Virus record (IMG/VR): IMGVR_UViG_3300035183_000733
Location: 62,001 to 126,000 of that record
DNA: 64,000 nucleotides
Strand: one strand, 5' to 3'
The notes beneath the pieces were generated by a model. That model did not search any database, was not told where the DNA came from, and saw nothing but the letters and a program-made list of their open reading frames with translations. Positions 4,446 to 64,000 of this stretch are shown piece by piece. Made by a program: the position numbers and the translations under genes. The stretch's first letter is position 1, and each line of letters starts with the position of its first letter.

Positions 4446-4447
4446 TT

Positions 4448-6541: not shown

Positions 6542-6546
6542 TTATA

Positions 6547-7632: not shown

Positions 7633-7778
7633 CAGCCTACCTGTATTGTAACTATTTCGGCCACTTGGGTGAACGTGTACGCAGAGCCGTCGAGGCTTAT
7701 GCCGACAATAGTGCCGGGGGTCGTGTCTGCGACCTCGAGCACAAATTCTGACGGATCAAAAACTATGTCGTTGATCAT
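7632..7778 (-). CDS. Small hypothetical protein (48 aa), not in ORF track
   Basis: MINDIVFDPSEFVLEVADTTPGTIVGISLDGSAYTFTQVAEIVTIQVG; fills the gap; TGATG overlap with the next start. Confidence 0.65.
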   Translation of the reverse strand: MINDIVFDPSEFVLEVADTTPGTIVGISLDGSAYTFTQVAEIVTIQVG

Positions 7779-7784
7779 GTTCTA

Positions 7785-9899: not shown

Positions 9900-9900
9900 C

Positions 9901-10668: not shown

Positions 10669-10683
10669 ATTTTATATATTTTC

Positions 10684-18908: not shown

Positions 18909-20146
18909 GCGAATGGGTCGTAATCATTTAGGTTGTCCTCCGACTTATCGTCATCCGACTTCTTCAAGTCGGTGACGTCCGTCAAACGCTGAAGTCCAAC
19001 CGGTATCTCGGTGTGTCCCATGGCCACCATGATCCTATTTATCGGGTCAAGAATAGTTTTAGAGAACTGCTCGTCGTAATCTATGGCAGGCGCGAACTCG
19101 TACGGATACATACCCGGTATGTAAGCGAACACGTTCTCCTCCGCGTTCTTGTGCTTGGTTTTTGCGTAGTAGAACTTGACCTTGTCGCCAGCCCTGATGA
19201 GCTGGTACTTAGACTTGTACTTGGACTGATTAAGGGTGAAGTTGTAGTAACCAGAAGCGCGGACGTGAATAGGTGTCTGCTTGCCAGTCTCGAATGCAGT
19301 TGTGTCATTCAGGATGTACTTCCCGTAGTCGTTGATGCTCCGGCCCATCGAGATCTTCTCAGGGTCCGCCATCTTGAACTCCTCCTTTATTTTTCGGAGA
19401 ATCGTCACCATCTCGTTCTTGTTCAAAGACTTCTTCTTAGTGAACACATATTTCACCAGCTCCTTGAGCTTCTCGCGAGCGAACGCCGGTGTCGAACTCT
19501 GCGCCAACTCAACTCCCTTAAATATAATGTGAGACAGAGACTCCATGGCTATGCCGGACTCCCACACCTCGTTTATCAGGTATTTCTTCTTAGCGAGCCA
19601 TATACCGGACTCGGAGATGTTTTCAAGCTCAAAGTCCATGTGGTTCTTGGTGTTCCACTTCTCAGCGTACTTATCGAAGCACTTGTTGAGATAGGAGGCG
19701 AGCCTGTGCTCGTTGATTTCGAGTATGAGTTGCTTTGGGTCCCCGGTCCAATTACACGACTCCACAACCTCCTCAAACGACACGTAGCAAGAATCCGTAT
19801 CCGAATAGATGTTCACTGGGCGCTTCACCTGCCTAACCTCGTAGTCTATGCCAAGCTTCGCGTGAAGCTCCGTATCCTTATGCCAAAATTCGTTGAAGTA
19901 CTGGTTGAGCCTCTCCTCAGCGTACTTGATGAGGTTTTGACCCTGCAACGTGATGGTCTCCGCAACCTCAGGGTTGAAGCACACCAGCCACTTGTTACCG
20001 AGCGCCCCGTATATGGAGTTGATGGTTAGCTTGATGGCCTGTTCCTCGTTTTTCCATTCGTTGGAGAGCTGCTTCATGCGCTCTATCTCCGCCTTGATTT
20101 CTTCTACGGTGGCGGTGGAAGGATCTATAGTAGTGTATGTAAACAT
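18905..20146 (-). CDS. Family B DNA polymerase, C-terminal subunit (gp43B-like)
   Basis: KLTINSIYG (motif B), YSDTDS (motif C), KKKY, KGVELAQSSTP; no exonuclease or motif A. Confidence 0.92.
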   Translation of the reverse strand: MFTYTTIDPSTATVEEIKAEIERMKQLSNEWKNEEQAIKLTINSIYGALGNKWLVCFNPEVAETITLQGQNLIKYAEERLNQYFNEFWHKDTELHAKLGIDYEVRQVKRPVNIYSDTDSCYVSFEEVVESCNWTGDPKQLILEINEHRLASYLNKCFDKYAEKWNTKNHMDFELENISESGIWLAKKKYLINEVWESGIAMESLSHIIFKGVELAQSSTPAFAREKLKELVKYVFTKKKSLNKNEMVTILRKIKEEFKMADPEKISMGRSINDYGKYILNDTTAFETGKQTPIHVRASGYYNFTLNQSKYKSKYQLIRAGDKVKFYYAKTKHKNAEENVFAYIPGMYPYEFAPAIDYDEQFSKTILDPINRIMVAMGHTEIPVGLQRLTDVTDLKKSDDDKSEDNLNDYDPFA

Positions 20147-20184
20147 CGAGAATATTTTGTTAATTTTATGGTGTTCAAATTGAT

Positions 20185-20592
20185 TTGTTTCTCGTGGATT
20201 TCCAACCAACAGAAGATGAAAACTATCTTACGCACCGGATGACGTCAGGTCGCGTTGAGATAGGTGTGTACCGCGTAATTTTCGGGTACAGGGTCAGAGC
20301 CGGCTACGTCGGCTCAGGGTTTTACCACATAGACTACTGTTGCGGGGCAGACCAAGATTGGATTAGACGGGTGTATGCTGCCGTGCTTACCGTGCTTACT
20401 GCACGCGAAGAGCAAGATGCCTTCAAGGGGTTCCCGTCACAGACATACAAGCCAATGTCAGAGGATTATGTCTGTTTCGTAAGCCTGTGCCAAATGATGA
20501 AGGGCGTCCCACCGGTGAAAGTCGAAATTAACGTCCCGCCTGTGGATAAGAACAAAATATTCAGCATTGAGTCGATGTTCAATGTTCAATGA
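20185..20592 (+). CDS. Hypothetical protein
   Basis: 135-aa ORF; start uncertain (TTG 20185 or GTG 20194). Confidence 0.55.
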   Translation: MFLVDFQPTEDENYLTHRMTSGRVEIGVYRVIFGYRVRAGYVGSGFYHIDYCCGADQDWIRRVYAAVLTVLTAREEQDAFKGFPSQTYKPMSEDYVCFVSLCQMMKGVPPVKVEINVPPVDKNKIFSIESMFNVQ

Positions 20593-31408: not shown

Positions 31409-33427
31409 TTACAGTGAATTGATTAGGTCCTCGTACGTCATAATCTTGATGCCCTTCTTCTCTGCGTCCTTCATCTTAGAGGTTTTAGAAGTATACGAAT
31501 CGGTAATAAGCAGAGACGCTTTGGCCAGCTTGCCGTGCACATACCCGTAACGTGCGACGTAATTAACAAACTCCTCCTTCGTCTTGTATCCGGCGCTTTC
31601 CGGGCTTCCAGTCATCTCGAATACGATAGCGCCTGCGGCAATCTGCTTCGGCATATTAACTGTGATGCCGTTATCCTTTAAAACTCCGAGGAAAGACTTT
31701 ATGGACTGGGACTGCCAAGAGTTGGCATTTAAGAACGGGTCCACAACCGCCTTCTCCAATCCCATGTTGTCGAAATTCTGTATGCGACCGGCAACGAGGT
31801 CTGCAACCGCCTTTGACCCTGTATCGCCGAGGCCATCAAATTGTAGTGCGAGAATCGCTTTGTCAAGGTCAACCTGTTTGATGGCCTTTATAGCGTTCAG
31901 GACAAGCTCGAGCTGACGTCCAGGCTTGAATACTCCGGCCTTACATAATGCCTGAGTGTTGAATTTGGTGGCATCGAAAACGTCGAAGATGGTCTTAACG
32001 CCGGACTTGATGAGGCCCTCGCAAGTGGAATCGCCGATCCCTTTAACTTTCAACGCGGATATACCAAGAGAAAGTTTGCGAGTGAGTTTACCGGAGCAAT
32101 CGGGGTTGTTGCACATCAAGTGCTCGGTGGGCGCATCATTTTTTTTGTTCGTAGAGTAAACCTCAACATCGATGTTGCCTCCGCAAGCGGGGCAACACGT
32201 AGGGAAGAAGTTCTTGTCGCGGATATATTTGGCGCTATCCGGAGACGGCTGAACTATTTTGATAATTTGCGGGATGATGTCACCGGCCTTGCGGATGGTA
32301 ACCACCGCGCCCGGGAACGTACCGCTCGCGATAATACGCGACTTGTTGTACAACGAAACTCTCGTAATCTCGGAACCGTCAAGATCAACCGGCTCGAGTA
32401 TGCCAACTGGGCTCAGCTCGCCGGTATAACCAACTTCCCAAACGTGTGAAATGATTTTTGTGGTAACCTCTTTGGCAGGGAACTTCAATGCAATCGCCCA
32501 TTTTGGATGACGGCTGTTCTCCCCAATAGCAGCGCGCTTGTTCTCAGGGGTCTTGAATACGATACCGTCAAGCTGGAACGGAGACTGCACCTCGCGGTAA
32601 TGCTTGAATATGTCGTACACTCTACGGTAATCCTGCGCGTTCTGGATTGTCTCAACGCGAACCGGATAGTCCTTGTTGAAGCCGAAGCGCTCGAGGTTTG
32701 CCATTGCGTCTTCCACGTAGTGTACTCTTCCGTTCTGGTGTACCTTCACAGAGTACGCCACGAACGCGCAATCTGACGAGCGCTCGTCCTTATCGTTGTT
32801 GGGATTCAATATGCCGGCAACCAGGTTGCGCGGGTTCTTAAAATCCTTCTGGTATTTGTTTTTGAAAATGGTCATCGGCATACAGACCTCTCCGCGTATC
32901 TCGATGTCCTTGTCGACCGGGAGCTGCTCTGGGATACCCATGGTGAGCAGCTTCTTTGTGACGTCACCTCCCTTGCCGTGTTCTCCTCGTGTTATCGCCA
33001 GCTTAAGCTTTCCGCCACGGTACTGAAGCTCAATTGCGTTACCATCGAATTTGGGAGTTGCCTCGAGCGGATACGTGTGTGTCGCGTTCCACGATTGGAT
33101 CTCCGCCAAAGGGAAGTTATCCTCATCGTTAACCTGAATCTTCTCAAGAGAAAGCATCGGACTCATGTGCGGGTGTATGAGCTTGTCGCGGTCGCCGTCG
33201 GCGCCACCGACCTTCTGTGTGACTTTGGAATCTTCAGACTCCAACCACAACTCCAGCCTGTCAAATTGCGGGTCTGACATGATAGGGTCTCCGCTGTAGT
33301 AGCGGTCCTTAGCCTTAAGGTACAGGGTTTCTTTTTCTTTGAGACTCATCTTCTTTAGACGAGATTCGAAACTGGCATCGGTGATGCCAATGAACGTGTC
33401 CTCTGTGTCGAATAAACTTTTTGCCAT
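31409..33427 (-). CDS. ligA: NAD-dependent DNA ligase
   Basis: YY.G.P.MSD..FD, PMLSL, KFDG, EIRGE, NPRN, DGIVFK, KAGDIIP, Zn finger, C-terminal BRCT. Confidence 0.95.
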   Translation of the reverse strand: MAKSLFDTEDTFIGITDASFESRLKKMSLKEKETLYLKAKDRYYSGDPIMSDPQFDRLELWLESEDSKVTQKVGGADGDRDKLIHPHMSPMLSLEKIQVNDEDNFPLAEIQSWNATHTYPLEATPKFDGNAIELQYRGGKLKLAITRGEHGKGGDVTKKLLTMGIPEQLPVDKDIEIRGEVCMPMTIFKNKYQKDFKNPRNLVAGILNPNNDKDERSSDCAFVAYSVKVHQNGRVHYVEDAMANLERFGFNKDYPVRVETIQNAQDYRRVYDIFKHYREVQSPFQLDGIVFKTPENKRAAIGENSRHPKWAIALKFPAKEVTTKIISHVWEVGYTGELSPVGILEPVDLDGSEITRVSLYNKSRIIASGTFPGAVVTIRKAGDIIPQIIKIVQPSPDSAKYIRDKNFFPTCCPACGGNIDVEVYSTNKKNDAPTEHLMCNNPDCSGKLTRKLSLGISALKVKGIGDSTCEGLIKSGVKTIFDVFDATKFNTQALCKAGVFKPGRQLELVLNAIKAIKQVDLDKAILALQFDGLGDTGSKAVADLVAGRIQNFDNMGLEKAVVDPFLNANSWQSQSIKSFLGVLKDNGITVNMPKQIAAGAIVFEMTGSPESAGYKTKEEFVNYVARYGYVHGKLAKASLLITDSYTSKTSKMKDAEKKGIKIMTYEDLINSL

Positions 33428-47685: not shown

Positions 47686-49200
47686 TTAGATGATACCTGA
47701 GGTAGGCACCTGGATCGTGAAAGTGAAGTACATTGTCTGTGGGTGGAATCCAGCTGACACGAGGGCGTAGCGAGACTTCACAGCGATCTTCGGAGACATA
47801 GTGCCTTCAGAGATTGTCTGGATAGACTCAGCCATCATGTACGGCATGAACTTCAGACCTGGCTCGTCGTCTGCGCCCTTACGGCCGACAAGTACGCGAG
47901 TGTCAGTCCACTTCATGTTCTGGTCAACGTACACAGTCATACCAGCGAGTGATCCTACTGGGTAGAGAGCACCGTTGTTCTGGCTTGCGGTGTTCGCGAA
48001 CGGAGCTGGCTGGAACTGGCTGATGTCCTGGATCGCCGTAGCAATCTGAGAGTTACATACAACGAAGTTCGCAGGTCCACGACGACCACGGTTTGCTACT
48101 ACGTTAGCGGCAGCAAGTATGCGGCTGAAGATTCTCCTCTGGAACGTCTGGAGGTTCTCGTACGTACCAACCGTAGGCAGAGCCGTAAGGTTGAGGTCGA
48201 GCACCTGTCCTTCAGTTGCAGCGAACTCAGTAGCGTTCTGCGTACCAAGACCGAATGCGGTCACGAGGATGTGTTTGTTGATGTGCTGTGATACATCGTT
48301 AACGAGCGAGTTCTCAACCATCGACACAACGTCGATACCGAACTGCTTGTTAAGGTCTTGTATCTGCTCAGTAGTTACCTGCGCAGCAAGCTGGTAGGTC
48401 TCAGTCTCAACGAACTTGGTGAAAGTCTTGAGGTTAGTCGTCCTGTAGTAGGTAGACTCACCAACTTCACGGGTCATTGGACCAGAGTCGTTAGCATCTG
48501 CGTAAGGACCGGTCCAGTTAGCTGTGTCAGTGTCACCTGCACCAGCGAAACCTTGGATGTGATCTTCGAGCATTGCTACGAGGGCAGCAGCGTTAGTAGC
48601 TGCAACCGGAGCTGCGTCAGTTGTTACTGTCGCGCCAACCACACCAATAACCTGAGCTACAGAGATGGTAGACGGAGTAGATGCACCAACCTTGAAGATT
48701 GGGTAACCGTCGATCCTCGACTTACCAACGAAGGTAAGGGCAAGGGTACCAGCACCTGAAGTTGCGGTGTACGATGTACCGTTAGTCCACGTACCTGTCG
48801 CGTTGAACTTGATCAGGAGTGGCTTATGGTCAGCGTTGTCGATACGTCCACCTGCGTAAACGTAATCGAGGTAGGTGAGAACACCTGTTGGGCCTGGCAT
48901 CGGGATAACCGGAACGATGTCGAAACCTACAGTCTTAGCTGCTACCTGGATAGCGAGCGGAAGAAGTGAAGGGAACTTGTCGCCGGAACCGTTAGCGGAC
49001 CTGGTCGGAGCCAAAGGCTGGCCCATACCGTTAAGCGCGTCGAGAGTGCCGTATCCAGCGTGGATAGCAGACTCATTGAGCGAGTGGTAGTGGCAGTACT
49101 TAGAAAGCCATTCTACTTTGTTCGAGTCTTTGATATTAGTCTTCTCGTTGATAACCGGAGACCAAGTTTCAAAAACCTCTTGTTCGTTGATCATTTTCAT
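47686..49200 (-). CDS. Major capsid protein (T4 gp23-like)
   Basis: WSPVI, DIVPVIPMPGPTG, TTEQIQDL, RRGPANFVV, VG.LAG..VYVD, FMPY, MSPKIAVKSRYAL. Confidence 0.95.
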   Translation of the reverse strand: MKMINEQEVFETWSPVINEKTNIKDSNKVEWLSKYCHYHSLNESAIHAGYGTLDALNGMGQPLAPTRSANGSGDKFPSLLPLAIQVAAKTVGFDIVPVIPMPGPTGVLTYLDYVYAGGRIDNADHKPLLIKFNATGTWTNGTSYTATSGAGTLALTFVGKSRIDGYPIFKVGASTPSTISVAQVIGVVGATVTTDAAPVAATNAAALVAMLEDHIQGFAGAGDTDTANWTGPYADANDSGPMTREVGESTYYRTTNLKTFTKFVETETYQLAAQVTTEQIQDLNKQFGIDVVSMVENSLVNDVSQHINKHILVTAFGLGTQNATEFAATEGQVLDLNLTALPTVGTYENLQTFQRRIFSRILAAANVVANRGRRGPANFVVCNSQIATAIQDISQFQPAPFANTASQNNGALYPVGSLAGMTVYVDQNMKWTDTRVLVGRKGADDEPGLKFMPYMMAESIQTISEGTMSPKIAVKSRYALVSAGFHPQTMYFTFTIQVPTSGII

Positions 49201-49218: not shown

Positions 49219-51207
49219 TTACTTTTTAAAACGTTGTCCGAGTTGTGACGCGATTTTGTCCATGTACTCTGTGCCGTAGCCGAGTGTCTTGGTTTTATCG
49301 GTGTTCGCTGGAACTGCCGTTTCATTTTCGTTGAGTTTTACAAGTCCAACAACCTTGCCCCTTACAAATGGCCTGCTTGTCCAGAAGTTCTTGATTTTGT
49401 ACTCGGTGTCGAGGTTCATCAATTTGCTCTGTGCAAGTATGCCTTGCTTTTCGGATTCGGTAAGCGCCTCGTAGAGCGGCTTAATCGACTCCGGAATCAT
49501 TTGCAGGAACTTCGGAGTGTCATCCTGCTTCTCAATCAAAGCTGCTTCCCAAATTTTGGTTACGTCAGCTTCTGAAAAGTACGCACCTGGTTTCAGGGCG
49601 TTTGCGACCTTTTCTTTCTTGGCCTCCTCGAGGGCTTCGAACTCGTTCCTCTTAGCTTCGCTTAGGAAGCGGAAGAAGTGGTACTGGCTCTCGTTCATTT
49701 TGGTGGCGGCTTTCTGTTTAGTAGCGGCCTCCAGCAGTTGGTTTATCTGTGCGGACAAACCAGTGTATTTGTTCGCCTCAGCTACGCTCTCGTTAACCTT
49801 GGCTATCGGTGCAGAACTATTGTTCGTAGCTGCTGGCATTGCGGTAACCGCTGGGGCCGCAGCAACGACGTTTTCAGCTATATATTCGGAATAAGCGATG
49901 TTATTCTCGATTTTTTCTGCCAAATACTCAGAATATCCGATTCCCCTGTCGAGGTTCTCTGCGAGGTACTCGGAATAAGAAATGTTCTTGTCGAGGTTCT
50001 CTGCGAGGTACTCGGAATAAGAAATGTTCTTGTCGAGGTTCTCTGCGAGGTACTCGGAATAAGAAATGTTCTTGTCGAGGTTCTCTGCGAGGTACTCGCT
50101 GTAGTTGATGTTCTTCTCGAGGTTCTCTGCGAGGTAGTCCATAAACGAAATACCGCGGTCGAGGTTCTCTGCGAGGTACTCGCTGTAAGAAATGTTACGG
50201 TCGAGGTTCTCTGCGAGGTACTCGCTGTAAGAAATGTTACGGTCGAGGTTCTCTGCGAGGTACTTAGAATACTCGATGTTCTTGTCGAGGTTCTCAGCCA
50301 CGTACTCAGTGTACTGAATGTTCTTATCAAGGTTGCCTGCGAGATACTTCATGTACCTCTCGTGCTTCTCGATTTTTTCAAGAAGGGTCTTGATAATTTC
50401 AGCATCAGTAGACTCGGTAACCTTCGACTTAACATTTTCAATCTCCTTCATGATTCCGGTACGGAATGCAGCGGACCAATCGTTGAGCTCTTCAGATGTT
50501 ACGAATTGATTCATGTCGTTGTTGGTTTTTTTGTCCTCATCCAGCATCGCCTTCTTAAACGCCGCATTGTTCGGATCTACACTATATATCTTCGTGTGTG
50601 CGGAAAATTCTGGCGCAAAGCTCTCCGAGATGTCCGTAAGCTCTGAAATAACGGACTTTTTAGTGCCCGCATCAAAGTTCGCGCTCTCGTAAATCCTATC
50701 AAGCTGTGCCTTTTCGAAACCAGGGTCTGCGACGAGGTCGTATGTGAATATCTTTTTGATCTTAACCTTCTTGTTCTCCATAACAGAACCGGCAGCACGC
50801 GAAGAAATAGACAGCGGGTATCCGGCGTCTACTAATGTCTTGGCAATCTGTCCGTGTGGAGTGTCGAGCAAGCGCACGCGAATCCTGAGGGTCCTGTCCT
50901 TCTCGTTGTACTCGAGCTTCTCAACTATGTGGGATATGTTCTTGAGGGAAACGTCAAACTTCTCTGGGTGGTCGAGCTCTCCGACCAGGCGCTTCTGCTG
51001 AATCTTCTTGTTTAGGTACTCGAGGTGCGGAAGATACTCCTTTGCCTCGTAAATCCTGTGGTTGTTATTCTCCTCGCCCATGATAGCGGCGATACCTTCG
51101 AGAATGTAGTCTTTCGGATTGCTACCCGTAGCCTCTACCACGAGGTTGCTCTCAGCACGCTCGAGGAGGAACACGTAGTTCTCTTGTAGTTGCAGGTTTG
51201 TATTCAT
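49219..51207 (-). CDS. Prohead protease (gp21-like) fused to a repeat scaffold (gp22-like)
   Basis: N.N.RIY, GELDHP, LDTP.G, ISSRAAG, YDLVADPGF, followed by 14-aa repeats. Confidence 0.92.
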   Translation of the reverse strand: MNTNLQLQENYVFLLERAESNLVVEATGSNPKDYILEGIAAIMGEENNNHRIYEAKEYLPHLEYLNKKIQQKRLVGELDHPEKFDVSLKNISHIVEKLEYNEKDRTLRIRVRLLDTPHGQIAKTLVDAGYPLSISSRAAGSVMENKKVKIKKIFTYDLVADPGFEKAQLDRIYESANFDAGTKKSVISELTDISESFAPEFSAHTKIYSVDPNNAAFKKAMLDEDKKTNNDMNQFVTSEELNDWSAAFRTGIMKEIENVKSKVTESTDAEIIKTLLEKIEKHERYMKYLAGNLDKNIQYTEYVAENLDKNIEYSKYLAENLDRNISYSEYLAENLDRNISYSEYLAENLDRGISFMDYLAENLEKNINYSEYLAENLDKNISYSEYLAENLDKNISYSEYLAENLDKNISYSEYLAENLDRGIGYSEYLAEKIENNIAYSEYIAENVVAAAPAVTAMPAATNNSSAPIAKVNESVAEANKYTGLSAQINQLLEAATKQKAATKMNESQYHFFRFLSEAKRNEFEALEEAKKEKVANALKPGAYFSEADVTKIWEAALIEKQDDTPKFLQMIPESIKPLYEALTESEKQGILAQSKLMNLDTEYKIKNFWTSRPFVRGKVVGLVKLNENETAVPANTDKTKTLGYGTEYMDKIASQLGQRFKK
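49870..50355. repeat. 42-bp tandem repeat encoding YSEYLAENLDKNIS (11 full + 1 partial)
   Basis: Directly visible in DNA and protein. Confidence 0.95.
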
Positions 51208-51598: not shown

Positions 51599-51862
51599 TC
51601 ATTGCTTGGGCTTGAAATGTTTACAGCTGAACTCTGGATCGAAAGATACCGGGCCGAACGGTGACTCACCGGGCCAGTCCCACCTGTAGAAGCCATTCGC
51701 TGTTCTGCCGTACGGAACGCACGCGCTGCGCACATCCTTGTTGTCGCACAGTCCAAGCATTATGTCTTCCAGTCTGTTACCCTGCACCCTGACCTTGTTG
51801 TAGTGCGCGCAGTTACCACAGCAGGGCTTAACTTGCTTCTTGCGTTTAAACGGCCAAATCAT
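51599..51862 (-). CDS. Small Cys-rich hypothetical protein
   Basis: CCGNCAHY...GLC...SCKHF. Confidence 0.65.
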   Translation of the reverse strand: MIWPFKRKKQVKPCCGNCAHYNKVRVQGNRLEDIMLGLCDNKDVRSACVPYGRTANGFYRWDWPGESPFGPVSFDPEFSCKHFKPKQ

Positions 51863-52671
51863 TTCAGGGTCTCCTTTCCGTACTTCCCGTACTCCGAGTT
51901 CACGCTCTCCTTGATTATGTTCATAGAGTCCTTTATCTGCTTGAAGTACGTGTCTATCGGCAGGTCGTTCGGATCGTCCGCGAATGGGTCCTCTATCTCG
52001 TTGCTTATTATCTCGATGCCGGCGACTATGTAGAATATGACCATGACCATCGCTGCGGCCCAGAGTCCGAGGTCGTGAAACAACCCGAATGGCAGGCTCA
52101 GCAGGTATATGAATATCGATGCCTTTATGTGCAGGGCGTACGCCTTCGGTATCGGCGTGCTCTTGATACGCTCGAACGAGTTGGATATGTCAACTATCTC
52201 ATTTAGTTTGTCCTCGAGAATGTTGAGGTCCCTGTCAGACAACTTGGCGTCGCGTATGAGTAACAACATATCGCAAACGAACTTGGTCTGCTTATTATGA
52301 TGTCCCATGACGTTATCGGCGTTCGTCTCTCGCAGGTAGTCGGACAGGTTGCGCAGTATCTGCTTTATGATGTTACGGGCCTGCGTCTTCACGAGGACGT
52401 CGGTGCAGCACGAGTTCAATTTTATTGAGAAGTAAGATATTGAGGTCGACAGCGCGCTGAAGAGCCTGCGTCCCTCCCACCAGCGGTCGTACGCGGTGTT
52501 CGTCCTGAAAACGAGCAGCAAGCCGATGACTATACCTATTAGCGAGTGCATGCTCGCCGGGATCTGAACATGGTAGTACTTACTGTTGACGTATAGCAGG
52601 TTGAGTAAAAACGTATAAACACCTATGACGCGTTGAACTTGCCGGCGAATTCTGTATTGTTGGTCGGGCAT
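51859..52671 (-). CDS. Bestrophin-family (YneE/VccN-like) ion channel
   Basis: LLVFRTNTAYDRWWEGR, ERIKSTPIP.AY, EIEDPF..D.NDLP; 4 hydrophobic segments; N-terminus possibly disrupted. Confidence 0.9.
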   Translation of the reverse strand: MPDQQYRIRRQVQRVIGVYTFLLNLLYVNSKYYHVQIPASMHSLIGIVIGLLLVFRTNTAYDRWWEGRRLFSALSTSISYFSIKLNSCCTDVLVKTQARNIIKQILRNLSDYLRETNADNVMGHHNKQTKFVCDMLLLIRDAKLSDRDLNILEDKLNEIVDISNSFERIKSTPIPKAYALHIKASIFIYLLSLPFGLFHDLGLWAAAMVMVIFYIVAGIEIISNEIEDPFADDPNDLPIDTYFKQIKDSMNIIKESVNSEYGKYGKETLK

Positions 52672-56168: not shown

Positions 56169-57596
56169 TTACTTAATATACTCTTCGAGCTTGGCTATCT
56201 CCTTGTTGATGTCGAGCATCTTCTTCTTGGTGGCCTTGCGCTTTGAATAAAGATCCTGCAGTATTGTACGCAAGACGGAGTCCTGTGTTGCGTCGAATAT
56301 GTTATTATTCGCCGTAATGATTTCCCCTTCCTTAGGTTTACCGTCGAGGCTCTTGCCCTTGTACGCCTCCGGAGAGATGTTGAACTGCATCATCGTATTC
56401 GGGTACAGGGACGCAAAGTCATAGCACGCAACCCAGTTGTGGAAACCGATAACCGGCTCCTTAACGTAAGCGCCCTCAAAGTGCTTCTGTTCCTGGTTGC
56501 GTTCCTCTTCCACGAATATCTTGCCCCTCTTGTAGAACTCGCGGCCCATGAGAGCCTCCTGCACAGACACCGGGGAGAACACCCTGTTTACCTCTACGCG
56601 GTCAACCTCTGCGAGCTTGAATAACGTCGTGAGAGTGTTTAGCTTCTTGTCTATGTAGTACACGAGCACGGAGTCAACCGCGTTGTAGAATATGAACTTG
56701 TTGTAGTCCTGCTCATACAAGTCCTTGAACGAACCGTTGTACTTTATCTTACCTATACCCGTCGCCTGCTCGCCGATGTGGTCGAGCTTGTAATTCTCTT
56801 TAATCTTGATGACGCGGTCCCACTTCTTGACAATCTCCAGGTAGTCGACTATGAGCCGGTGTTGCGGCAGCTTGTCCTTTCCAATCAAGGTATTGCTCAC
56901 CGAAGATATTGCTGGATCTATTTTCAATCGCTCGCACCTGTTGACGAGGTACGGCCAGTCAAACCCGCGTATGTTCCAACCAGTGATGCAGGGCATCTTG
57001 TGTATGAACTTAGCGAAGAACGTGTACAACATGTCGTACTCGCTGTCGAACTTGAAGTACCTGAACACCCACTTGTCGTTGAACTTCTTGAAGTGCTCGT
57101 TGACATCGCGCCCTATGGCATCTTGTTCTGCAGCAGTCAGTTCCTTCAGAGCGAGAACGGTTACGGCTTTGTCGGTGCAATTCACTATGGATATTGCAGT
57201 GACCTTATTAAGGGCGAACTCGGGATCGGGAAATCCGTCGGTCACCTCGGTCTCAATATCTATAATGTATTTCTTCGGCACGTTGAACTCAAACACCTCC
57301 TCGAGCTCCTTGGCTCTGTCGTAGAATATCTCCTCTATCCTGTACCTATTCAACCTCAGAGATCGCTCCTTGCGGACGGCACGCAGATTCCATGACATGA
57401 TGCCCGGCTCCGGCTTATCCGTACCGCGAGCATATCCCCAGGTAAACGCGTCCTTCTGCTGCAATGGCAGCTCTTTGTACGCTATCTCTCCGTTCTTGTC
57501 GAAATACGATATGCGCAAGTCCTTTATGCGCTCGCGCATGCCCCGAGTGTTCTCAGTCTCTATCTGTTCGGTTCTTACTTGTACGTCTACTATCAT
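56169..57596 (-). CDS. Family B DNA polymerase, N-terminal subunit (3'-5' exonuclease + motif A)
   Basis: DIETE, TGWNIRGFDWPYL, YN..D, FEGAYVKEP, YDFASLYP; ends in the fingers helix KRKATKK. Confidence 0.93.
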   Translation of the reverse strand: MIVDVQVRTEQIETENTRGMRERIKDLRISYFDKNGEIAYKELPLQQKDAFTWGYARGTDKPEPGIMSWNLRAVRKERSLRLNRYRIEEIFYDRAKELEEVFEFNVPKKYIIDIETEVTDGFPDPEFALNKVTAISIVNCTDKAVTVLALKELTAAEQDAIGRDVNEHFKKFNDKWVFRYFKFDSEYDMLYTFFAKFIHKMPCITGWNIRGFDWPYLVNRCERLKIDPAISSVSNTLIGKDKLPQHRLIVDYLEIVKKWDRVIKIKENYKLDHIGEQATGIGKIKYNGSFKDLYEQDYNKFIFYNAVDSVLVYYIDKKLNTLTTLFKLAEVDRVEVNRVFSPVSVQEALMGREFYKRGKIFVEEERNQEQKHFEGAYVKEPVIGFHNWVACYDFASLYPNTMMQFNISPEAYKGKSLDGKPKEGEIITANNNIFDATQDSVLRTILQDLYSKRKATKKKMLDINKEIAKLEEYIK

Positions 57597-58045
57597 TGGA
57601 GTGTGGATAAAAATTTGTCAAACTCGTCGAGCTCTGCTTGCGTTACCGCATAGAACTCTGCTTGCGTTACCGCATGCTTGTCCGCAAAGTACGCGACGAC
57701 CGGATCTTTGTGCTCCGGCTTTATATTACGTGTGACCAAAGTCTTTGTTCCGTCCTCCTTGGCAAGAATGATGGAAACAATATACTCGCCGATCCTCTTT
57801 GTGTTTAGCATATTGGTGAGCTTCTCGAGATCCTGTACCGCGTTGTCGAATGCGGTCTTGGCTTCGCGTATAATCCTGTACGCATCGTCGGATACGTCCG
57901 TCATATTCAGCGTTAACGCGTTGTTCGATATTTCCCGAGCGTAGCCCTCGAGCATATCGATCGATCTCGAATTGGCCTGGCGTTCGGCGAGCTCCTTGAG
58001 CTTCGCACGCAACTCCTCCACTATTTTATTATGTGTGTTGTCCAT
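57593..58045 (-). CDS. Hypothetical protein
   Basis: 150-aa ORF; short AVTQAE duplication. Confidence 0.7.
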   Translation of the reverse strand: MDNTHNKIVEELRAKLKELAERQANSRSIDMLEGYAREISNNALTLNMTDVSDDAYRIIREAKTAFDNAVQDLEKLTNMLNTKRIGEYIVSIILAKEDGTKTLVTRNIKPEHKDPVVAYFADKHAVTQAEFYAVTQAELDEFDKFLSTLQ

Positions 58046-58047
58046 GG

Positions 58048-58488
58048 TTAGTTTGTTCCGGTTGAACCGAAAGCTCCGGCGCCACGCTCGGTTTCTGTGG
58101 ATATGTCGCTCGACTCCTCAAGTTCGCCCATCCATACCTCTCGCATAACAAGCTGCGAAATCTTGTCCCCTTTTTTTATATGGACATCTGTATCAGAGTT
58201 GTTAAAAAAATGAATATGTACAGTGCCACGATAATCACTATCTACTAATTCTGCACCCTTACTCAATTTCTTTTTCGTTGCTACACCTGATTTGTTATAG
58301 ACTGCAAGGTCCCAACCAAAGGGAATATCAAAACGTATGTCCAGTGGTATAAGTGCATCACCACGTCCAGGTACTACAATGTCTATAGGGGAGAACACAT
58401 CTAACCCAGATGAACCAACAGTACCTCGCACTGGAGCTTTTGCATTCTCGGTCAATAATTGATATTTTAACTTCGGATATTTTTTCAT
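58048..58488 (-). CDS. dut: dUTPase (trimeric)
   Basis: SSGLDV, KSG, VDSDYRG, GDKISQLV, RGAGAFGSTG. Confidence 0.93.
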   Translation of the reverse strand: MKKYPKLKYQLLTENAKAPVRGTVGSSGLDVFSPIDIVVPGRGDALIPLDIRFDIPFGWDLAVYNKSGVATKKKLSKGAELVDSDYRGTVHIHFFNNSDTDVHIKKGDKISQLVMREVWMGELEESSDISTETERGAGAFGSTGTN

Positions 58489-58500
58489 GATATATAGTTT

Positions 58501-59238
58501 ATGAATACCTCTATAATATACATGCTGATAGACCCTGTTTCGGATGAAGTCAAATATATTGGAAAAACTAAGAGGACACTGGCTAAGAGGCTGGAAAATC
58601 ACCTATACGAACTCAAGTATAATACTAAGAAAGTAAATTGGATAAAATCATTAAAGTCTAAAAATTTAATACCTTTTATATTTGAGCTGGACAGAGTTCC
58701 AAATGAAGATGTAAATTTTTGGGAAATACATTACATCTCATTATTTAGAAGTTGGGGTATAGAACTATTGAATGGCACGCCTGGTGGAGACGGACTACCG
58801 CTCGGATATAAACATTCAGCAGAAACTAAGCGCAAAATAGGATTAGCATCTATTAGAACAAGGGCGGGCAAACAAGCCACGGATACAGCGAGATTAAATA
58901 TGTCTATCGCGCACAAAGGTAAAAAACACTCCGAAGAATTTAAAACACATATTTCCAATTGTAACAAACTTCGCAAATTAAAAGGCGAATATAAACCGTT
59001 GTCTAATGAGCACAAATTAAAATTGTCCAATTCCCTAAAGGGTCGTAAGGTACATAATAAGGGTAAACCTATGTCTACCGAGCAAAAATTGAAATTAAAA
59101 ATGGCTAACCTCGGAAAACGATGGTTTAATGATGGTACAAATAATTACTTAATACATCCAGAAAATTCGGCCATGCTCATAAAAGGAAGGATAAAAAAAT
59201 ATGGCCCGAAGGAAAAATCCTCCAGGCCCCCGCGATAG
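58501..59238 (+). mobile_element. Free-standing GIY-YIG homing endonuclease with NUMOD3-like repeats
   Basis: IIY...KYIGKT...R..NH, E..YI, N.TPGGDG, HSAETKRKI/HSEEFK repeats; AT-rich; opposite strand to its neighbours. Confidence 0.88.
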
Positions 59239-59252
59239 CTTGCCAAGCTATT

Positions 59253-61667
59253 TTAATTTGCTGCAGTGTGTTCCTGCGTGCTGTTGTTCTTGATGAAGTC
59301 GCGAATCTTAGACTCGAGCGGCGTGCCCTTGATTGTCTCCATAAGGCCGTCAAAGCTTCCCTTAGCGAACATATCGCCGAGGCCGCCGTTCTGCACCTTG
59401 AGGTTCTTTGCGAGAGTCTCGGTGAAGCTCACTGTGGATATAGCCATCAGCGCCTCGACCATTTTCGGATCAACGGCTTTAGCCTTCTCGACAGTCTCGT
59501 TAACGCGAATATCAGACTCTGCCTTGCTAACGAAAAGCTCCTGGTCGGCCTCAGCCTTCTCACGAGCGAGCTTGCGCTTGGCTATCTCGTCGAGACCATC
59601 CTGACGGTTCTTCTCATCGTTGAGCTTAGCGAGCTCGTTCTTGGCCATCTCCTGGATCTCCTTGAGCTGGATCTCATACTTGAGCATGTTGGTCTTGTTC
59701 TTCTCCTCGATCTGCTTCCTCATTATCTCCTCGGTCTTCGTGGTGTATTCAAGTTCCTGCTGCTTGCTCTGCATATCGAGGTTGTGCTTGACGGTGTTCT
59801 GCTGTGCTCTCCTGAGCATCTCAGCGATACCGGAATCTCCAATCTCTATGTTGAGAACCTCGACGTCGTACACGACCATGCCGTTCTCTTCAAATGTGCG
59901 ACCTGGGCGCTTGCTGTCTTCGTTCTTGCCGAGGATGAGGTCGCGGATTATGTCGGTAGCCGAAAGGTTGAACTCCTCGATCGTCGTTTTCTTGACAGCG
60001 TTGCGCACGACCGAACGTAGGTGCTGTGTGAGCAATTTGACGTAGTTCGATACGCTGAACCACTTCTTGTTGTCCCCGTCGAAATTAACTCTGTAAGAAA
60101 GGCGGATGCTAACGTTGACCGCGTCCTTGGTCTCCGCGTTAATTACGTCGGATACTATGTTGTTGTCGGTCTGTAAGTATACCGTGCGGAACAGGGTGTT
60201 GTCGGTTTTAGGCTTGCCGGTCGAGAGCGCAAGAACTTCGAGTGTCTCATCGAAATCAAGCAATGCAACCTTAGGTCCTTCCACAACCGAGCGCTCGCCG
60301 GTCTTCTTCACTATCTGGACCGCGTAGCCCGGCCACACGTTGATGCAAATAGCCCCCTCGTATTTTGTATCGAGCGTGATAGTACGGGGCTTGGTGAACT
60401 TCTCGCTGCGTTGTAATTCGTCTGCCACGGCAGAGAAACGCACGGTGCTCTTGGCGCGCAAGTCTGCGGTGCCATATTCGGCGAATAAGCCTGTCGGACC
60501 TTCCGAGCCGCTGATGCCCTGCGCTGCCTTCATGCGGGAATTGTAATCCTTCGCCTCGTGATTGCCCGGGAACCAAAGGTCAACCGTTCTGTCGTCGAGA
60601 ACCCTCTTCACAATAACTTCCTTGCGTGGATCCGGCAACAACATGCTCGGCCCCTTGACGGTCTTAACCTCGCCGGTGCTCTTGTCGAGCATGTACCTTG
60701 CCTCACCGGCAGGAACGGCCACCGCGTAGTGCACGACTTGGTCTCCGTATTTAATGATAGCGTGTTCCGGGCGCGGGAAGTAAATCTTCTGCTGCTTGCC
60801 TGTTATGAATAACTCGTCACCGGACTTGTAGTCTTCGTAGTCTGCGATCACCTTTACATAGATGCCCATGTTATCGTTCAGCTCGATGGCTTTGAACTTG
60901 GTGTTGCCGTTCTGCTCCACAAACGTCTCTGTCGGTTTAGGGAACACAACGGAAGGCCCTTCAACGAACCGCTTGTCGCCGTTCTGATCGAGTAGTATGC
61001 AGTACTCAAGACGCTCGAGAGTGACGGCTTTCCTCACGTACTTGCCGCTGTCGTTATCCTTAAGCACCTCGATACCGGTCGGTGGTATGTAGAACGACAC
61101 ATCCGTACCTTTAATGATGAAGAGCTTGCCTATCGCAATGTCCTTCTCGTTTATCGTTGTCGTGGAATTCTTCTTCTGTTCCTCCGCCTCATCGTTGGTC
61201 TTGATGATGGCATTCTTCAGATTCTTCTTAGCGGCATCCTCGTTGTATACGCGGACGAGCAGATACTCGTTGCTCTTAAGTTGGTGACCTGGAATTACGT
61301 TACCAATCTGTCCTGGGAACAGGGCCATTGTGTAAGGTCCCGGGATATTGATCTTGTGACCGATGTAGAGGTCCGGCGACTGCTGCTTGCCCTTGATTGG
61401 ATGTTGGATATTATCGCCCTTGTTCGGGTTGGTTAGGACGATGTACTCGCCCTCGTTTGCTGTTGGGAAGGTCTGTATCGCGTCCATCGCTGTGGATGCC
61501 CTGTGATACCTTCTTTGATTCGGGTCATAAGTTACCGGCTTGTCTGTGTCTGCGAGACTTATCTTGTTTGGTCCCACTATCACATCGACCTGACCGCTTG
61601 CGCCGTCCTGCACGTACACGAATGTGCCCTGTGCCAGAATGATGTCGCCTGTTCTTTCGTTACTCAT
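59253..61667 (-). CDS. Major vault protein (MVP) homologue
   Basis: Repeated vault-type units (V.D..SG.V.VIVGP; LLDQNG.KRFVEGP; LDKSTGEVKTVKGP; KTGERSVVEGP), LSTGKPK, shoulder/SPFH-like domain, long C-terminal coiled coil. Confidence 0.85.
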   Translation of the reverse strand: MSNERTGDIILAQGTFVYVQDGASGQVDVIVGPNKISLADTDKPVTYDPNQRRYHRASTAMDAIQTFPTANEGEYIVLTNPNKGDNIQHPIKGKQQSPDLYIGHKINIPGPYTMALFPGQIGNVIPGHQLKSNEYLLVRVYNEDAAKKNLKNAIIKTNDEAEEQKKNSTTTINEKDIAIGKLFIIKGTDVSFYIPPTGIEVLKDNDSGKYVRKAVTLERLEYCILLDQNGDKRFVEGPSVVFPKPTETFVEQNGNTKFKAIELNDNMGIYVKVIADYEDYKSGDELFITGKQQKIYFPRPEHAIIKYGDQVVHYAVAVPAGEARYMLDKSTGEVKTVKGPSMLLPDPRKEVIVKRVLDDRTVDLWFPGNHEAKDYNSRMKAAQGISGSEGPTGLFAEYGTADLRAKSTVRFSAVADELQRSEKFTKPRTITLDTKYEGAICINVWPGYAVQIVKKTGERSVVEGPKVALLDFDETLEVLALSTGKPKTDNTLFRTVYLQTDNNIVSDVINAETKDAVNVSIRLSYRVNFDGDNKKWFSVSNYVKLLTQHLRSVVRNAVKKTTIEEFNLSATDIIRDLILGKNEDSKRPGRTFEENGMVVYDVEVLNIEIGDSGIAEMLRRAQQNTVKHNLDMQSKQQELEYTTKTEEIMRKQIEEKNKTNMLKYEIQLKEIQEMAKNELAKLNDEKNRQDGLDEIAKRKLAREKAEADQELFVSKAESDIRVNETVEKAKAVDPKMVEALMAISTVSFTETLAKNLKVQNGGLGDMFAKGSFDGLMETIKGTPLESKIRDFIKNNSTQEHTAAN

Positions 61668-61736
61668 TAGTCTCCAACACTTTGTACTCGGAGTTTGGGT
61701 AATCCACTAATACCTTGTATCGTTCTTCTCTGAAAA

Positions 61737-62180
61737 TCATGCGAGATGCCTTTCGTCTTTGTACACCGGTTTCGGTTTGTTATTGTGAGTCCACAGACGT
61801 GCGAATGGCGTATCGAAATAATCGTTATACCTCATGGTGTCGTCTATGTGGAAATCGATACCGTGTTCCTTACAGTAGTCCCCCTTCGCCCTGTCCCACA
61901 GGATGTTGTCCTGATCCTTGTCGCCAGTGTTGATCCACGGGTGGTCGGGGTTAGGGTCGTATCGCATTGGAGTACCCGAGTTGATGTGGTGATCTGTGAT
62001 GCTGAACTGGTGAGTCCACTTTATGCCGAGATCTCTGAGCTGCTTCTCGATGTCTTCGTTCCACTTAGAACCGGTCATAATGTGCACCTCGTGCCCGTTA
62101 TCAACGAGCAATGTCGTTAGCACCGAAAAAACTTTGGGCAGCGCATCTATCACGCCATGAATGTCGAATCCGAACTTCAT
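61737..62180 (-). CDS. HAD-superfamily hydrolase-like protein
   Basis: FGFDIHGVI, IMTG, K...C, HIDD. Confidence 0.7.
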   Translation of the reverse strand: MKFGFDIHGVIDALPKVFSVLTTLLVDNGHEVHIMTGSKWNEDIEKQLRDLGIKWTHQFSITDHHINSGTPMRYDPNPDHPWINTGDKDQDNILWDRAKGDYCKEHGIDFHIDDTMRYNDYFDTPFARLWTHNNKPKPVYKDERHLA

Positions 62181-62527
62181 CTGAACCTCCTTAATTTACT
62201 TATAGATTTGTAGTTTGTCATTATCAAAACGAACATAGATAGTGCACCAATTATCAGGAACACCCAACGCAGCCAGGATACATAAGGGGCCCACCCTGCA
62301 GTGGTAATATCCGGTATCATCCAGCACACGTTCATCAACAGCCAGCAATTGGTGGCTACTGCAACGAGCACCTTGATCAGATGGTAGTCCGCGTGCCAGA
62401 ACATAAGCATGGTCGAGTATACTGTCGGCACTATCAGTACGGCCGCGAGCGTATCTTGGTCGGACATCCAGCAGACGTCCATCAAGAACCATAGTATCGA
62501 CGATATGTCCTCAATCAGTTTCTTCAT
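62177..62527 (-). CDS. Four-TM membrane protein
   Basis: Internal duplication W.LM.VCWM; hydrophobic. Confidence 0.7.
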   Translation of the reverse strand: MKKLIEDISSILWFLMDVCWMSDQDTLAAVLIVPTVYSTMLMFWHADYHLIKVLVAVATNCWLLMNVCWMIPDITTAGWAPYVSWLRWVFLIIGALSMFVLIMTNYKSISKLRRFR

Positions 62528-62658
62528 GCGTTTATTCCCCTTGCGTTTAATTTCTTGATAACAATCTTCTCCTCATCGCGTAGCTTGGCGGCCTCCTCGT
62601 ATTTTTGATTGCGCATTGTGCGGTTCTTTTCCTCCTTTATTCTGCGCAGCTCGAGCAT
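62524..62658 (-). CDS. Stand-alone UVR (UvrB/C, ClpC-type) coiled-coil peptide, 44 aa (not in ORF track)
   Basis: MLELRRIKEEKNRTMRNQKYEEAAKLRDEEK...; overlaps both neighbours' stop/start codons. Confidence 0.65.
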   Translation of the reverse strand: MLELRRIKEEKNRTMRNQKYEEAAKLRDEEKIVIKKLNARGINA

Positions 62659-63575
62659 CAGGTCCTCGATTTCTTTGTCGAGTCTATCAAGCTCGGGTTG
62701 CTTCTAACCGCGCACACGGGGATAGCCACCATCTTGTGACGGTTGGCCCTGTTTCTCGTTCTGTATATGTCGAGCACTTGCTGCTGTCTGTCAGTCAGAT
62801 CATGTTCGAGAGGCTTCTGCATTCTATCGGTCTCCTCGTAATCCATGGCCCACTCGAGCTCGGCATACGTGGCGCCGATCTGGTCCTCGTCCGTGCGGCC
62901 GTCGTCCCAGAGGCCGTCAGTCGGTCTCGCATCCTGTATCTCGGAGATAATGCCCAGGCACTTGGCCAGCTCATAAACCTCGGTCTTGTTGAGGTCGGCT
63001 ATCGGGCTTAAGTCGACCCCGCCATCTCCATACTTGGTGAAAAAACCCACGCCGAAATCCTCGATGCGATTGCCGGTGCCTGCAACGAGCAACTTATGCT
63101 TGGTCGCCAGATAGTACAGGGCAGTCATCCGCATGCGGGCCCTCGTGTTAGCCCTCGACAGGAATTCGGTCTCACGACCTACTTTCTTCTCCAGTCCATT
63201 GTACGGTGAGTTGGGGAACCTGGTAGTGAACACGGAATCGATGTCGTTAAGCGCGAGCATGAAGTGCTCGTACACGCTGGTGAGGTCGTAATGCACGACG
63301 TCAATATTATGCACGCGCTGTTCCTCCGAGATCCTTACAAGGGAGTCAATGTGCTTGTGTGCCCGCCTGACTTCGTCGGTCTTCTGCGCTATTGGCATGA
63401 CAACGCACACGGTGCGCAACCCTGTCATTGAGCACAGCTTGGAAACTACAGCAGAATCTACTCCGCCCGATACTCCGACCACGAAACCGTTCACGTTGGC
63501 ATTGGTAGCATAATCCTTTAACCACTTAACTATGTGGTTTGCCACCGCCGGCATTTTTAAAACTTTACCGGACAT
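62658..63575 (-). CDS. nadE: NH3-dependent NAD+ synthetase
   Basis: GVSGGVDS, NTRARMRM, GTGN..E, GFFTKYGDGGVD, PTDGLW, DEDQIG. Confidence 0.95.
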   Translation of the reverse strand: MSGKVLKMPAVANHIVKWLKDYATNANVNGFVVGVSGGVDSAVVSKLCSMTGLRTVCVVMPIAQKTDEVRRAHKHIDSLVRISEEQRVHNIDVVHYDLTSVYEHFMLALNDIDSVFTTRFPNSPYNGLEKKVGRETEFLSRANTRARMRMTALYYLATKHKLLVAGTGNRIEDFGVGFFTKYGDGGVDLSPIADLNKTEVYELAKCLGIISEIQDARPTDGLWDDGRTDEDQIGATYAELEWAMDYEETDRMQKPLEHDLTDRQQQVLDIYRTRNRANRHKMVAIPVCAVRSNPSLIDSTKKSRT

Positions 63576-63984
63576 TATCTGAATTTATTAGTTTCACCAT
63601 TGTATACGACAGACCGAAATCCTTGGCGACCTCGCCTATCTTCTTTGTTTTACACGCTTCACGAATCTTGGCGTCTCGCTGCTGGCGCTCCTTGGGTGTG
63701 AGTTTCTTCTTCTTGTCCTTGTGCACACCATTGCTGTGCCAGATGCTGTACACGTAATCCTTGCACAGTCCGTGCTTGTCTGCCGTGTACTGTGCCGAGA
63801 ATCCGCCGATCTTGCCCATCTGCACGATGTTCTCGTCGCGGTATCTCTGCGACTCCTTGAACAGATTGTACCCGAGGTTGGATTTTATCTCCCTCATAGT
63901 TTTCTCTCCGTACTTGGATGTGATGCCGCGGTACCAGGTTTTCCATGTTCGGTCGATGCCGCCCGGGTTTTCCTCGGACTTCAT
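63565..63984 (-). CDS. Hypothetical protein with C-terminal HTH
   Basis: RDAKI....KIGEVAKDFGLSY..VKLI. Confidence 0.6.
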   Translation of the reverse strand: MKSEENPGGIDRTWKTWYRGITSKYGEKTMREIKSNLGYNLFKESQRYRDENIVQMGKIGGFSAQYTADKHGLCKDYVYSIWHSNGVHKDKKKKLTPKERQQRDAKIREACKTKKIGEVAKDFGLSYTMVKLINSDNVR

Positions 63985-64000
63985 GTTCTCGTTGGACTTT

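Follow-up and report, generated by a model that had tools for sequence, protein, structure and literature searches.

A Full-Length Homolog of the Major Vault Protein Encoded in a Huge-Phage Lineage

Introduction

The shell of the vault particle is made by the major vault protein (MVP), which is sufficient on its own to build it. To our knowledge, the function of vaults has remained unresolved after four decades, and no bacterial MVP has been characterized. Here, we describe an MVP homolog encoded in a 64,000-nt stretch of DNA that corresponds to positions 62,001–126,000 of the IMG/VR virus record IMGVR_UViG_3300035183_000733. We refer to this entire stretch as the window, and all coordinates are those of the window unless another locus is named. 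The gene lies at 59253–61667 on the minus strand.

MVP homologs in bacteria have been known since reports that appeared between 2013 and 2019 (Daly 2013, PMC3762200; Sokolskyi 2019, 10.1101/872010), and vault-like proteins are also present in Borgs and archaea. Neither vault nor SPFH proteins are mentioned in a comparative survey that covered 224 cultured jumbo phages. MVPs were, however, reported in the gut Caudoviricetes ctOa11 and ct2Ri15, where they have an MVP-like AlphaFold model, are closest to bacterial MVPs, and were not assigned a function (Santos et al. 2023, 10.1101/2023.11.10.566534). Phage MVPs are, therefore, already described, and the initial annotation of this stretch, which was made from the letters and their translations, overrated the novelty of the gene. 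Our contribution is to show how broad and how deep the family is in large phages that have not been cultured, and to provide two functional leads.

Compared with eukaryotic MVP (rat, human; 4V60, 9BW5), the phage protein has the domain order, a co-linear alignment, a whole-chain structural match, and predicted solubility in common. It differs in that identity is only ~17–19% in the structural alignment and in that it has about eight rather than nine repeats as modeled, a disordered insert (aa 386–439), a shorter cap helix, and a partly conserved nicotinamide adenine dinucleotide (NAD+) pocket; moreover, TEP1, PARP4, and vault RNA were not found among the window open reading frames (ORFs) scanned or by Rfam, and assembly of the phage protein is predicted only. 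Bacterial MVPs (Myxococcota, Bacteroidota, Chloroflexota, Vulcanimicrobiota, and others) are 45–48% identical to it over the full length and have the same size and the same Pfam matches including Band_7; unlike the phage gene, they are chromosomal genes of free-living bacteria, fall in a separate well-supported clade (71 of 80 sequences), and have no neighborhood in common with the phage genes. The MVPs of ctOa11 and ct2Ri15, which were not in the phage collection that we searched and are compared here by description, are likewise phage-encoded, ~810 aa long, and located outside the structural gene cluster; those are human-gut phages with presumed Firmicutes hosts, whereas the phage described here is environmental and has a contig of 374 kb.

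Identification of a Full-Length MVP Homolog

The gene is an uninterrupted ORF of 804 codons with an ATG start and a stop codon, in agreement with the initial annotation, which did not give its strand. The motifs on which that annotation based its assignment are all present in the translation and in the order described (VVEGP...LEVLALSTGKPK, SDVINAETKD...IRLSY, and WFSVSNYV, followed by RSVVRNAV...EEF...IIR..ILG and FEENGMVVYDVEV), and in HMMER alignments they pair with the corresponding motifs of rat and human MVP.

Searching the protein against MVP models, a check that the initial annotation had proposed, yielded two strong matches in Pfam. MVP_shoulder (PF11978) matched aa 502–611 with an e value of 2.1e-27 (95.9 bits, cutoff 25) over positions 2–118 of the 118 in the profile, and Vault_3 matched aa 449–498, that is, the last repeat, with an e value of 1.9e-9. 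Both models matched in all 50 family members that were scanned. The remaining vault repeats are below the Pfam thresholds (Vault_4, e value 0.12), and the Band_7 model (PF01145), which represents the SPFH domain, just passes with 24.6 bits against a gathering score of 23.6 (e value 3e-5). No model from PHROGs, NCBIfam, or PADLOC matched the protein. When sequences in the PDB were searched, MVP chains were identified with an e value of 2e-17 using the single sequence, and a family profile built from 32 sequences matched human MVP with an e value of 1.7e-30. Six PDB sequences were significant in these searches, all of them MVP from rat, human, or rabbit, and no other PDB sequence reached significance. 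The profile alignment to human MVP is co-linear, with positions 219–352 aligned to MVP 275–409 in the middle repeats and positions 451–760 aligned to MVP 460–820, a region that runs from the last repeat through the shoulder and cap helix into the beginning of the cap ring.

A structure prediction for the monomer points in the same direction. Using 102 diverse relatives as input, most of which were translated from fetched viral loci, AlphaFold (AF2) gave a model with a predicted local distance difference test score (pLDDT) of 80.8 and a predicted template modeling score (pTM) of 0.57, and with a pLDDT of ~90 over aa 10–385 and 440–610; this model supersedes an earlier run on 32 close sequences that was poor (pLDDT 55.6). 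In a Foldseek search of the PDB, the first 12 matches to the model are whole MVP chains (e values 1e-33 to 5e-28, ~910 aligned columns) with template modeling (TM) scores of 0.38–0.47 for most, and the next are four chains from murine MVP R1–R7 crystal structures (e values 3e-15 to 5e-14, TMt 0.56–0.59, root-mean-square deviation ~7 Å). SPFH cage proteins, namely flotillin, HflK/C, prohibitin, erlin, and stomatin, rank after MVP with values of 1e-7 to 1e-5. They have the shoulder fold and the long helix in common with the phage protein and form closed multimeric cages; however, they are membrane-anchored and have no vault repeats, whereas the phage protein is anchorless and has a repeat body of ~440 residues. 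Because the confident model matches the R1–R7 repeat crystal structures, we exclude that the N-terminal 460 aa are something other than vault repeats and that the protein has a generic SPFH domain only.

The domain layout deduced from the model and the profiles is as follows, with all parts encoded on the minus strand. The N-terminal vault-repeat body (aa 1–385; 60513–61667), delimited using AF2, DSSP, Foldseek, and the profile, comprises about seven beta units according to DSSP (aa 8–56, 64–109, 121–157, 182–213, 215–259, 267–304, and 312–353) and ends in helices at aa 359–385. These helices form part of an insert (aa 359–439), helical in part and otherwise disordered, that continues into a low-confidence and poorly conserved linker (aa 386–439; 60351–60512), with a pLDDT below 50 at aa 388–421. 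The last vault repeat, which is R9-like (aa 440–500; 60168–60350), is the one that matches Vault_3 and aligns with MVP 460–519; it is closed by an S-T-G-K-P-K loop at aa 482–487, in which S482, P486, and K487 are invariant among the 102 sequences. It is followed by the SPFH/Band-7-like shoulder (aa 501–611; 59835–60167; pLDDT ~90), to which the MVP_shoulder and Band_7 matches map, and by a cap-helix-like single long helix (aa 612–729; 59481–59834; pLDDT 70–84) that is defined by DSSP and by the profile alignment. The C-terminal helical tail (aa 730–804 and stop codon; 59253–59480; pLDDT 45–64) contains short helices at aa 736–795 and is the putative equivalent of the cap ring, given that the profile alignment extends to MVP residue 820. 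Mean column conservation is 0.62–0.70 in the repeats, 0.65 in the shoulder, 0.44 in the linker, and lowest, at 0.37, in the cap helix. The values in the repeats and shoulder point to selection over the full length of the protein. The initial annotation had described this last helical region as a long coiled coil; a helix of 118 residues is indeed predicted there, but its heptad periodicity is not significant.

Internal repeats are only weakly detected by profile–profile self-comparison (probabilities of 53% or less), so that we counted the repeats on the structure model. Because DSSP shows about eight beta units and the profile alignment has an offset of one repeat, the model and the alignment suggest about eight vault repeats compared with the nine in MVP. 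A hydropathy scan found no 19-residue segment with a mean Kyte–Doolittle value above 1.6 anywhere in the protein, which, therefore, should be soluble. Taken together, a shoulder, tandem repeats, a cap helix, and co-linear full-length similarity are all found, and sequence profiles and the structure model support the assignment of the 804-aa product as a full-length MVP homolog with repeat body, shoulder, and cap helix.

Residence of the Gene in a Phage Genome

The window is unmistakably phage DNA. PHROG matches include a major head protein (47686–49200) and a prohead protease (49219–51207) as well as UvsX, both topoisomerase II subunits, an NAD-dependent ligase, and a split family-B DNA polymerase (PolB). 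The exact MVP protein is encoded on a 373,759-bp JGI contig, and its gene order recurs over 22 kb on a Logan contig from an independent assembly. The MVP gene has a GC content of 0.52 and a GC content at third codon positions (GC3) of 0.698 compared with 0.69–0.71 for nadE, PolB, topoisomerase II, and UvsX, consistent with the phage codon usage noted in the initial annotation. The gene is a resident of a huge-phage lineage with a contig of at least 374 kb, in which it is part of a replication and nucleotide-metabolism module.

A GGAG Shine–Dalgarno-like motif is present on the minus strand at 61672–61675, 4 nt ahead of the ATG, as read directly from the sequence, and a consensus scan predicts, by pattern match only, an intrinsic-terminator-like hairpin (59193–59228, minus strand; 11 pairs, of which seven are G-C, and a T-run) that lies 25 nt past the stop codon. 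A promoter scan found sites no more numerous than in shuffled sequence.

Distribution and Phylogeny of Phage MVPs

Relatives of the protein are numerous. A word-indexed search gave more than 6,700 matches with an e value of 1e-3 or less, many of them on contigs of 100–530 kb, and several to many such proteins are already labeled "major vault protein" by JGI. In a representative library of 1.84 billion sequences, the matches fall into 1,155 clusters (50% identity) at an e value of 1e-3 or less and 588 at 1e-30 or less. Two peptide patterns alone recovered at least 204 IMG/VR contigs that carry a full-length relative, and among the best 80 of these 204 contigs 42 reach a length of 100 kb or more and 16 a length of 200 kb or more. 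In the GenBank phage collection of 50,697 genomes, megablast gave no match, and the matches identified by tblastn were limited to three huge phages that are uncultured (LR756500, 462 kb; LR756501/503, 735 kb), whose homologs are full-length with 50–54% identity. A library of viral structures contains no full-length phage match; the best match is the giant-virus protein A0A3G5A4K1 of Harvfovirus (802 aa), which is full-length (e value 1.7e-13) but is a protein of a eukaryotic virus with 11% identity and a prohibitin-domain annotation only. Full-length MVPs are, thus, common in large and huge phages rather than a peculiarity of the two from the gut.

Among the GTDB genomes, 470 bacterial species have a match, including cultured Nannocystis and Enhygromyxa at 45–48% identity. 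To place the phage protein relative to bacterial MVPs, as the initial annotation had suggested, we constructed an unrooted FastTree phylogeny of 156 viral and genome-derived sequences. In this tree, 71 of the 80 genome-derived proteins group in one clade with a support of 99, the viral MVPs form several deeper clades, and the sequences nearest to the MVP of the window are all viral or of uncertain binning. The other nine genome-derived MVPs (loci L081, L082, L091, L107, L111, L115, L143, L149, and L152) nest inside viral clades. Their contigs, some of them short but two as long as 329 kb and 368 kb, had been assigned to MAGs of candidate phyla radiation (CPR) bacteria, of archaea (Methanosarcinales, Promethearchaeota), and of Cytophagales and other groups, and are probably huge-phage contigs mis-binned as cellular.

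Possible Functions of the Phage MVP

The reading that we favor, and consider fairly probable, is that this bacterial-type full-length MVP, as a resident gene product of a huge phage, self-assembles into a cytoplasmic vault-like shell with cargo. The protein would be made from the replication and nucleotide-metabolism module using its own ribosome-binding site and terminator-like hairpin, and the soluble and anchorless product would assemble in the cytoplasm of the infected cell into a large closed ring or barrel, the wall of which would consist of the repeats and the closed end of the shoulders together with the cap helices. The shell would enclose or bind cargo, for which our leading guesses are small molecules of the nucleotide or ADP-ribose type that would be sequestered, or RNA or a ribonucleoprotein (RNP). 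By homology, an oligomeric shell is most probably formed; a large homo-oligomeric barrel or cap is likely because MVP alone builds the shell and because the SPFH proteins matched by the structure model all form closed cages. As a phage gene must pay off within one infection cycle, its functions are narrowed to sequestration, protection, or counter-defense. The cage-forming and counter-defense roles proposed in the initial annotation are inferred.

Several findings weigh against such a shell. The structure model covers the monomer only, and the step from monomer to shell is taken by homology. The cap helix has 118 residues compared with ~155 in MVP, and it is the part that is least conserved and has no significant heptad periodicity. 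With what appears to be one repeat fewer and with an insert of ~50 disordered residues, the geometry could differ from that of the vault and the ring might not close. TROVE/TEP1, PARP, and vault RNA were not found in the scanned ORFs or by Rfam in the 64 kb surveyed of at least 374 kb, and among 12 mapped residues of the human NAD+ pocket one is identical and three are conservatively replaced. Finally, we clustered all ORFs within 10 kb of MVP, initially for 81 viral loci and subsequently for a set of 161 that included bacterial loci, and no family-wide neighbor emerged that would give a functional clue.

A different use of the protein is suggested by the human pocket. Human MVP binds NAD+, ADP, and ADP-ribose between adjacent shoulders, and R504 and K506 of its keyhole loop touch the diphosphate (PMC12280208; 10.64898/2026.05.01.722283 for the binding). 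The shell, or small oligomers, could bind NAD+-derived molecules at the shoulder interface and so buffer NAD+ or absorb ADP-ribose immune signals, with nadE and the NAD-dependent ligase being part of one NAD economy. The most conserved loop of the family, S482-T-G-K485-P486-K487, aligns with the human keyhole loop R504-P505-K506, and in HMMER alignments the invariant K487 is identical to K506, whereas K485, N503, and I504 are paired with R504, D521, and F522, respectively. In addition, nadE is 1 kb upstream of MVP, the ligase is encoded within the window, and NADAR and phosphoesterase genes are found near MVP in another viral clade. This loop conservation is a predicted lead toward NAD+ or ADP-ribose binding. 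However, most pocket residues differ (R507 to T, P508 to D, H509 to N, L517 to Q, W545 to V, P565 to S, and K573 to Q), the alignment of R511 is ambiguous, and no more than 4 of the 81 viral loci have nadE within 10 kb of MVP; furthermore, conservation of the pocket is variable even among animals (PMC12280208). We, therefore, regard a role as NAD+ or ADP-ribose sponge as possible but rather unlikely.

The second lead comes from the genomic context of MVP in a deep viral clade (loci L054–L079), in which MVP is close to and co-oriented with genes for a DUF2828+DUF7788 protein (13 loci) and an RlaP nucleotidyltransferase (17 loci), with three calcineurin-like phosphoesterases, an AAA_33 kinase, and NADAR as further neighbors (for example, L067:6641–8167, L068:6675–7484, L064:13247–14755, and L063:20474–20929), so that the surroundings combine RNA repair with the processing of ADP-ribose. 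Such a set could be pictured as an RNA or RNP vault in which the shell, an RNA-binding vWA partner, and RNA-repair enzymes guard and repair tRNAs or other RNAs hit by anticodon nucleases of the host, in analogy to the eukaryotic set of MVP, TEP1 (TROVE), and vault RNA. The C-terminal part of the DUF2828+DUF7788 protein is vWA-like with a DxSGS motif, and the layout of a helical region plus vWA recalls the TROVE proteins Ro60 and TEP1. Sets of RNA-repair genes, with RlaP among them and in occasional cases a TROVE protein, are already known in jumbo phages (PMC7824862). On the other hand, when DUF2828 was examined as a TROVE homolog, sequence and profile searches of the PDB and a search of Pfam (e value of 10 or less) gave weak vWA matches only, the linkage is limited to one clade and may represent inherited synteny, and the RNA-repair genes of this clade are not near MVP in the window, where the only counterpart is a weak metallophosphatase match 38 kb away. 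Rfam and tRNA scans of the 64-kb window gave no matches. For the phage described here, we consider an RNA-guarding vault clearly unlikely.

Huge phages package many proteins, and the capsid and prohead protease genes lie 8–10 kb from MVP, both of which would fit a virion-associated protein, whether internal, scaffold-like, or decorating, in place of an intracellular shell. This idea was raised, and discounted, for the gut phage MVPs (10.1101/2023.11.10.566534). We also find it quite improbable: MVP is located between nadE and dUTPase/PolB, outside the structural block, it has no PHROG match, and orthologs with 45–48% identity are encoded on Nannocystis and Enhygromyxa chromosomes where a phage context is not apparent.

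Even less probable, to a degree that makes it very hard to accept, is a membrane-bound SPFH scaffold that regulates a protease in the manner of HflK/C–FtsH or stomatin–NfeD rather than forming a free vault. The Band_7 match is above the Pfam gathering score, Foldseek matches include HflK/C, QmcA–YbbJ, prohibitin, and others, and in each of the three large-contig relatives that are closest, a ClpP-family gene is the first or second gene downstream of MVP. The protein, however, has no transmembrane or hydrophobic segment, its vault-repeat body of 385 residues stands where the membrane anchor would be, ClpP is missing at this position in the window, and no ClpP homolog was found within 10 kb of MVP in the 80 IMG/VR loci.

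Finally, the view that the gene is a chimera of the assembly, or was recently acquired from a host and has no phage role, for which the frequency of bacterial homologs could be cited, is effectively refuted because the independent assembly has the same 22-kb arrangement, relatives of 61–67% identity keep orthologs at the same position, the phage genes on either side have the same GC and GC3, and the nearest sequences in the tree are viral or uncertainly binned with most bacterial MVPs in a clade of their own.

The loop similarity to the NAD+/ADP-ribose pocket and the RNA-repair/vWA neighborhood in one viral clade provide two concrete hypotheses for the proposed MVP shell that we favor. A much broader and speculative proposal, which we think unlikely to hold as a whole, is that vault shells are an ancient and widespread counter-defense compartment of large phages, serving as a signal sponge or as housing for RNA-repair RNPs, that the viral lineages are at least as old as the bacterial ones, and that phages may have spread or even originated vaults. 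If true, what vaults do, a question now 40 years old, could be approached in a system that is genetically tractable.

Gene Neighborhood of MVP

Upstream of MVP is a block of co-oriented genes on the minus strand (61737–63575) with the gene order given in the initial annotation: nadE (62658–63575; NAD_synthase, e value 1.9e-49), a 44-aa UVR peptide (62524–62658; PF02151, e value 8.5e-5), a 116-aa hydrophobic protein with three hydrophobic windows (62177–62527), and a 147-aa unassigned ORF (61737–62180). The last of these had been called a HAD hydrolase, a label that we could not confirm, as the protein has no match in Pfam, NCBIfam, or PADLOC. These four genes had also been put forward as candidate partners of MVP. 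In the neighborhood surveys described above, the most frequent neighbor cluster occurs in 17 of the 81 viral loci and is clade-specific, and, among the other viral loci, a single one has a homolog of the 147-aa ORF within 10 kb of MVP and none has a homolog of the 116-aa ORF. Because the neighbors are not conserved across the family, a partner role of nadE, the UVR peptide, the membrane protein, or the putative hydrolase is unsupported, and we rejected it.

The downstream block (56169–59238) contains genes on both strands. A NUMOD3 homing-endonuclease-like ORF (58501–59238, plus strand) is inserted on the opposite strand between MVP and the gene for dUTPase (58048–58602, minus strand), and these are followed by a 150-aa ORF (57593–58045, minus strand) and by the N-terminal part of PolB (56169–57596, minus strand). 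The NUMOD3 ORF is absent from the same position in L163–L165, the three closest large-contig relatives, and its paralogs are scattered over many viral loci.

The order MVP-(dUTPase)-ClpP-PolB(N)-DUF4494 is kept in relatives of 61–67% identity on contigs of 113–165 kb, in line with vertical retention of the gene. The ClpP-family protease genes are located at L163:11043–11669, L164:10931–11569, and L165:10524–11165; in the window, the place of ClpP is occupied by the 150-aa ORF, which is unrelated to it. The adjacency is reminiscent of SPFH–protease pairs but is lineage-specific, and a pairing of MVP with ClpP as a general feature was rejected given that ClpP is absent from this position in the window and that no homolog of it was found within 10 kb of MVP in the 80 IMG/VR loci.

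Upstream of nadE, a putative activator of 278 aa with similarity to helix-turn-helix (HTH)/sigma-70 region 4/Mor-like proteins occupies 63565–64000 and runs off the end of the window (L161:7267–8103 in the surveyed locus L161). A similar gene is located directly upstream of MVP in L164 and L165, which suggests that MVP is in a regulated, perhaps middle, transcription unit. The NAD-dependent DNA ligase (31409–33427) and nadE are both phage-encoded, and in L163 a cytidylyltransferase-like gene, possibly for an NMN adenylyltransferase, is located two genes upstream of nadE; together these genes suggest a phage NAD-supply module.

Other Features of the Window

PolB is split into an exonuclease/N-terminal part (56169–57596) and a C-terminal polymerase part (18905–20209), both on the minus strand and ~36 kb apart, and the N-terminal part is a separate 470-aa gene in the relatives L163–L165 too. 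Unusual accessory genes around the locus include a bestrophin-like channel (9e-50), LemA, a GGACT/AIG2-like gamma-glutamyl cyclotransferase, a peptidase M50, and DHFR, with positions at 51859–52671 in the window and at L161:17037–17540, L161:18295–18753, and L161:1–1300; LemA is near MVP also in L163, L054, and L068. Four consecutive tail-fiber genes encoding collagen-like proteins (Gly-X-Y type) of 361–697 aa, with many PHROG tail-fiber matches, are located at 3015–12222 on the minus strand.

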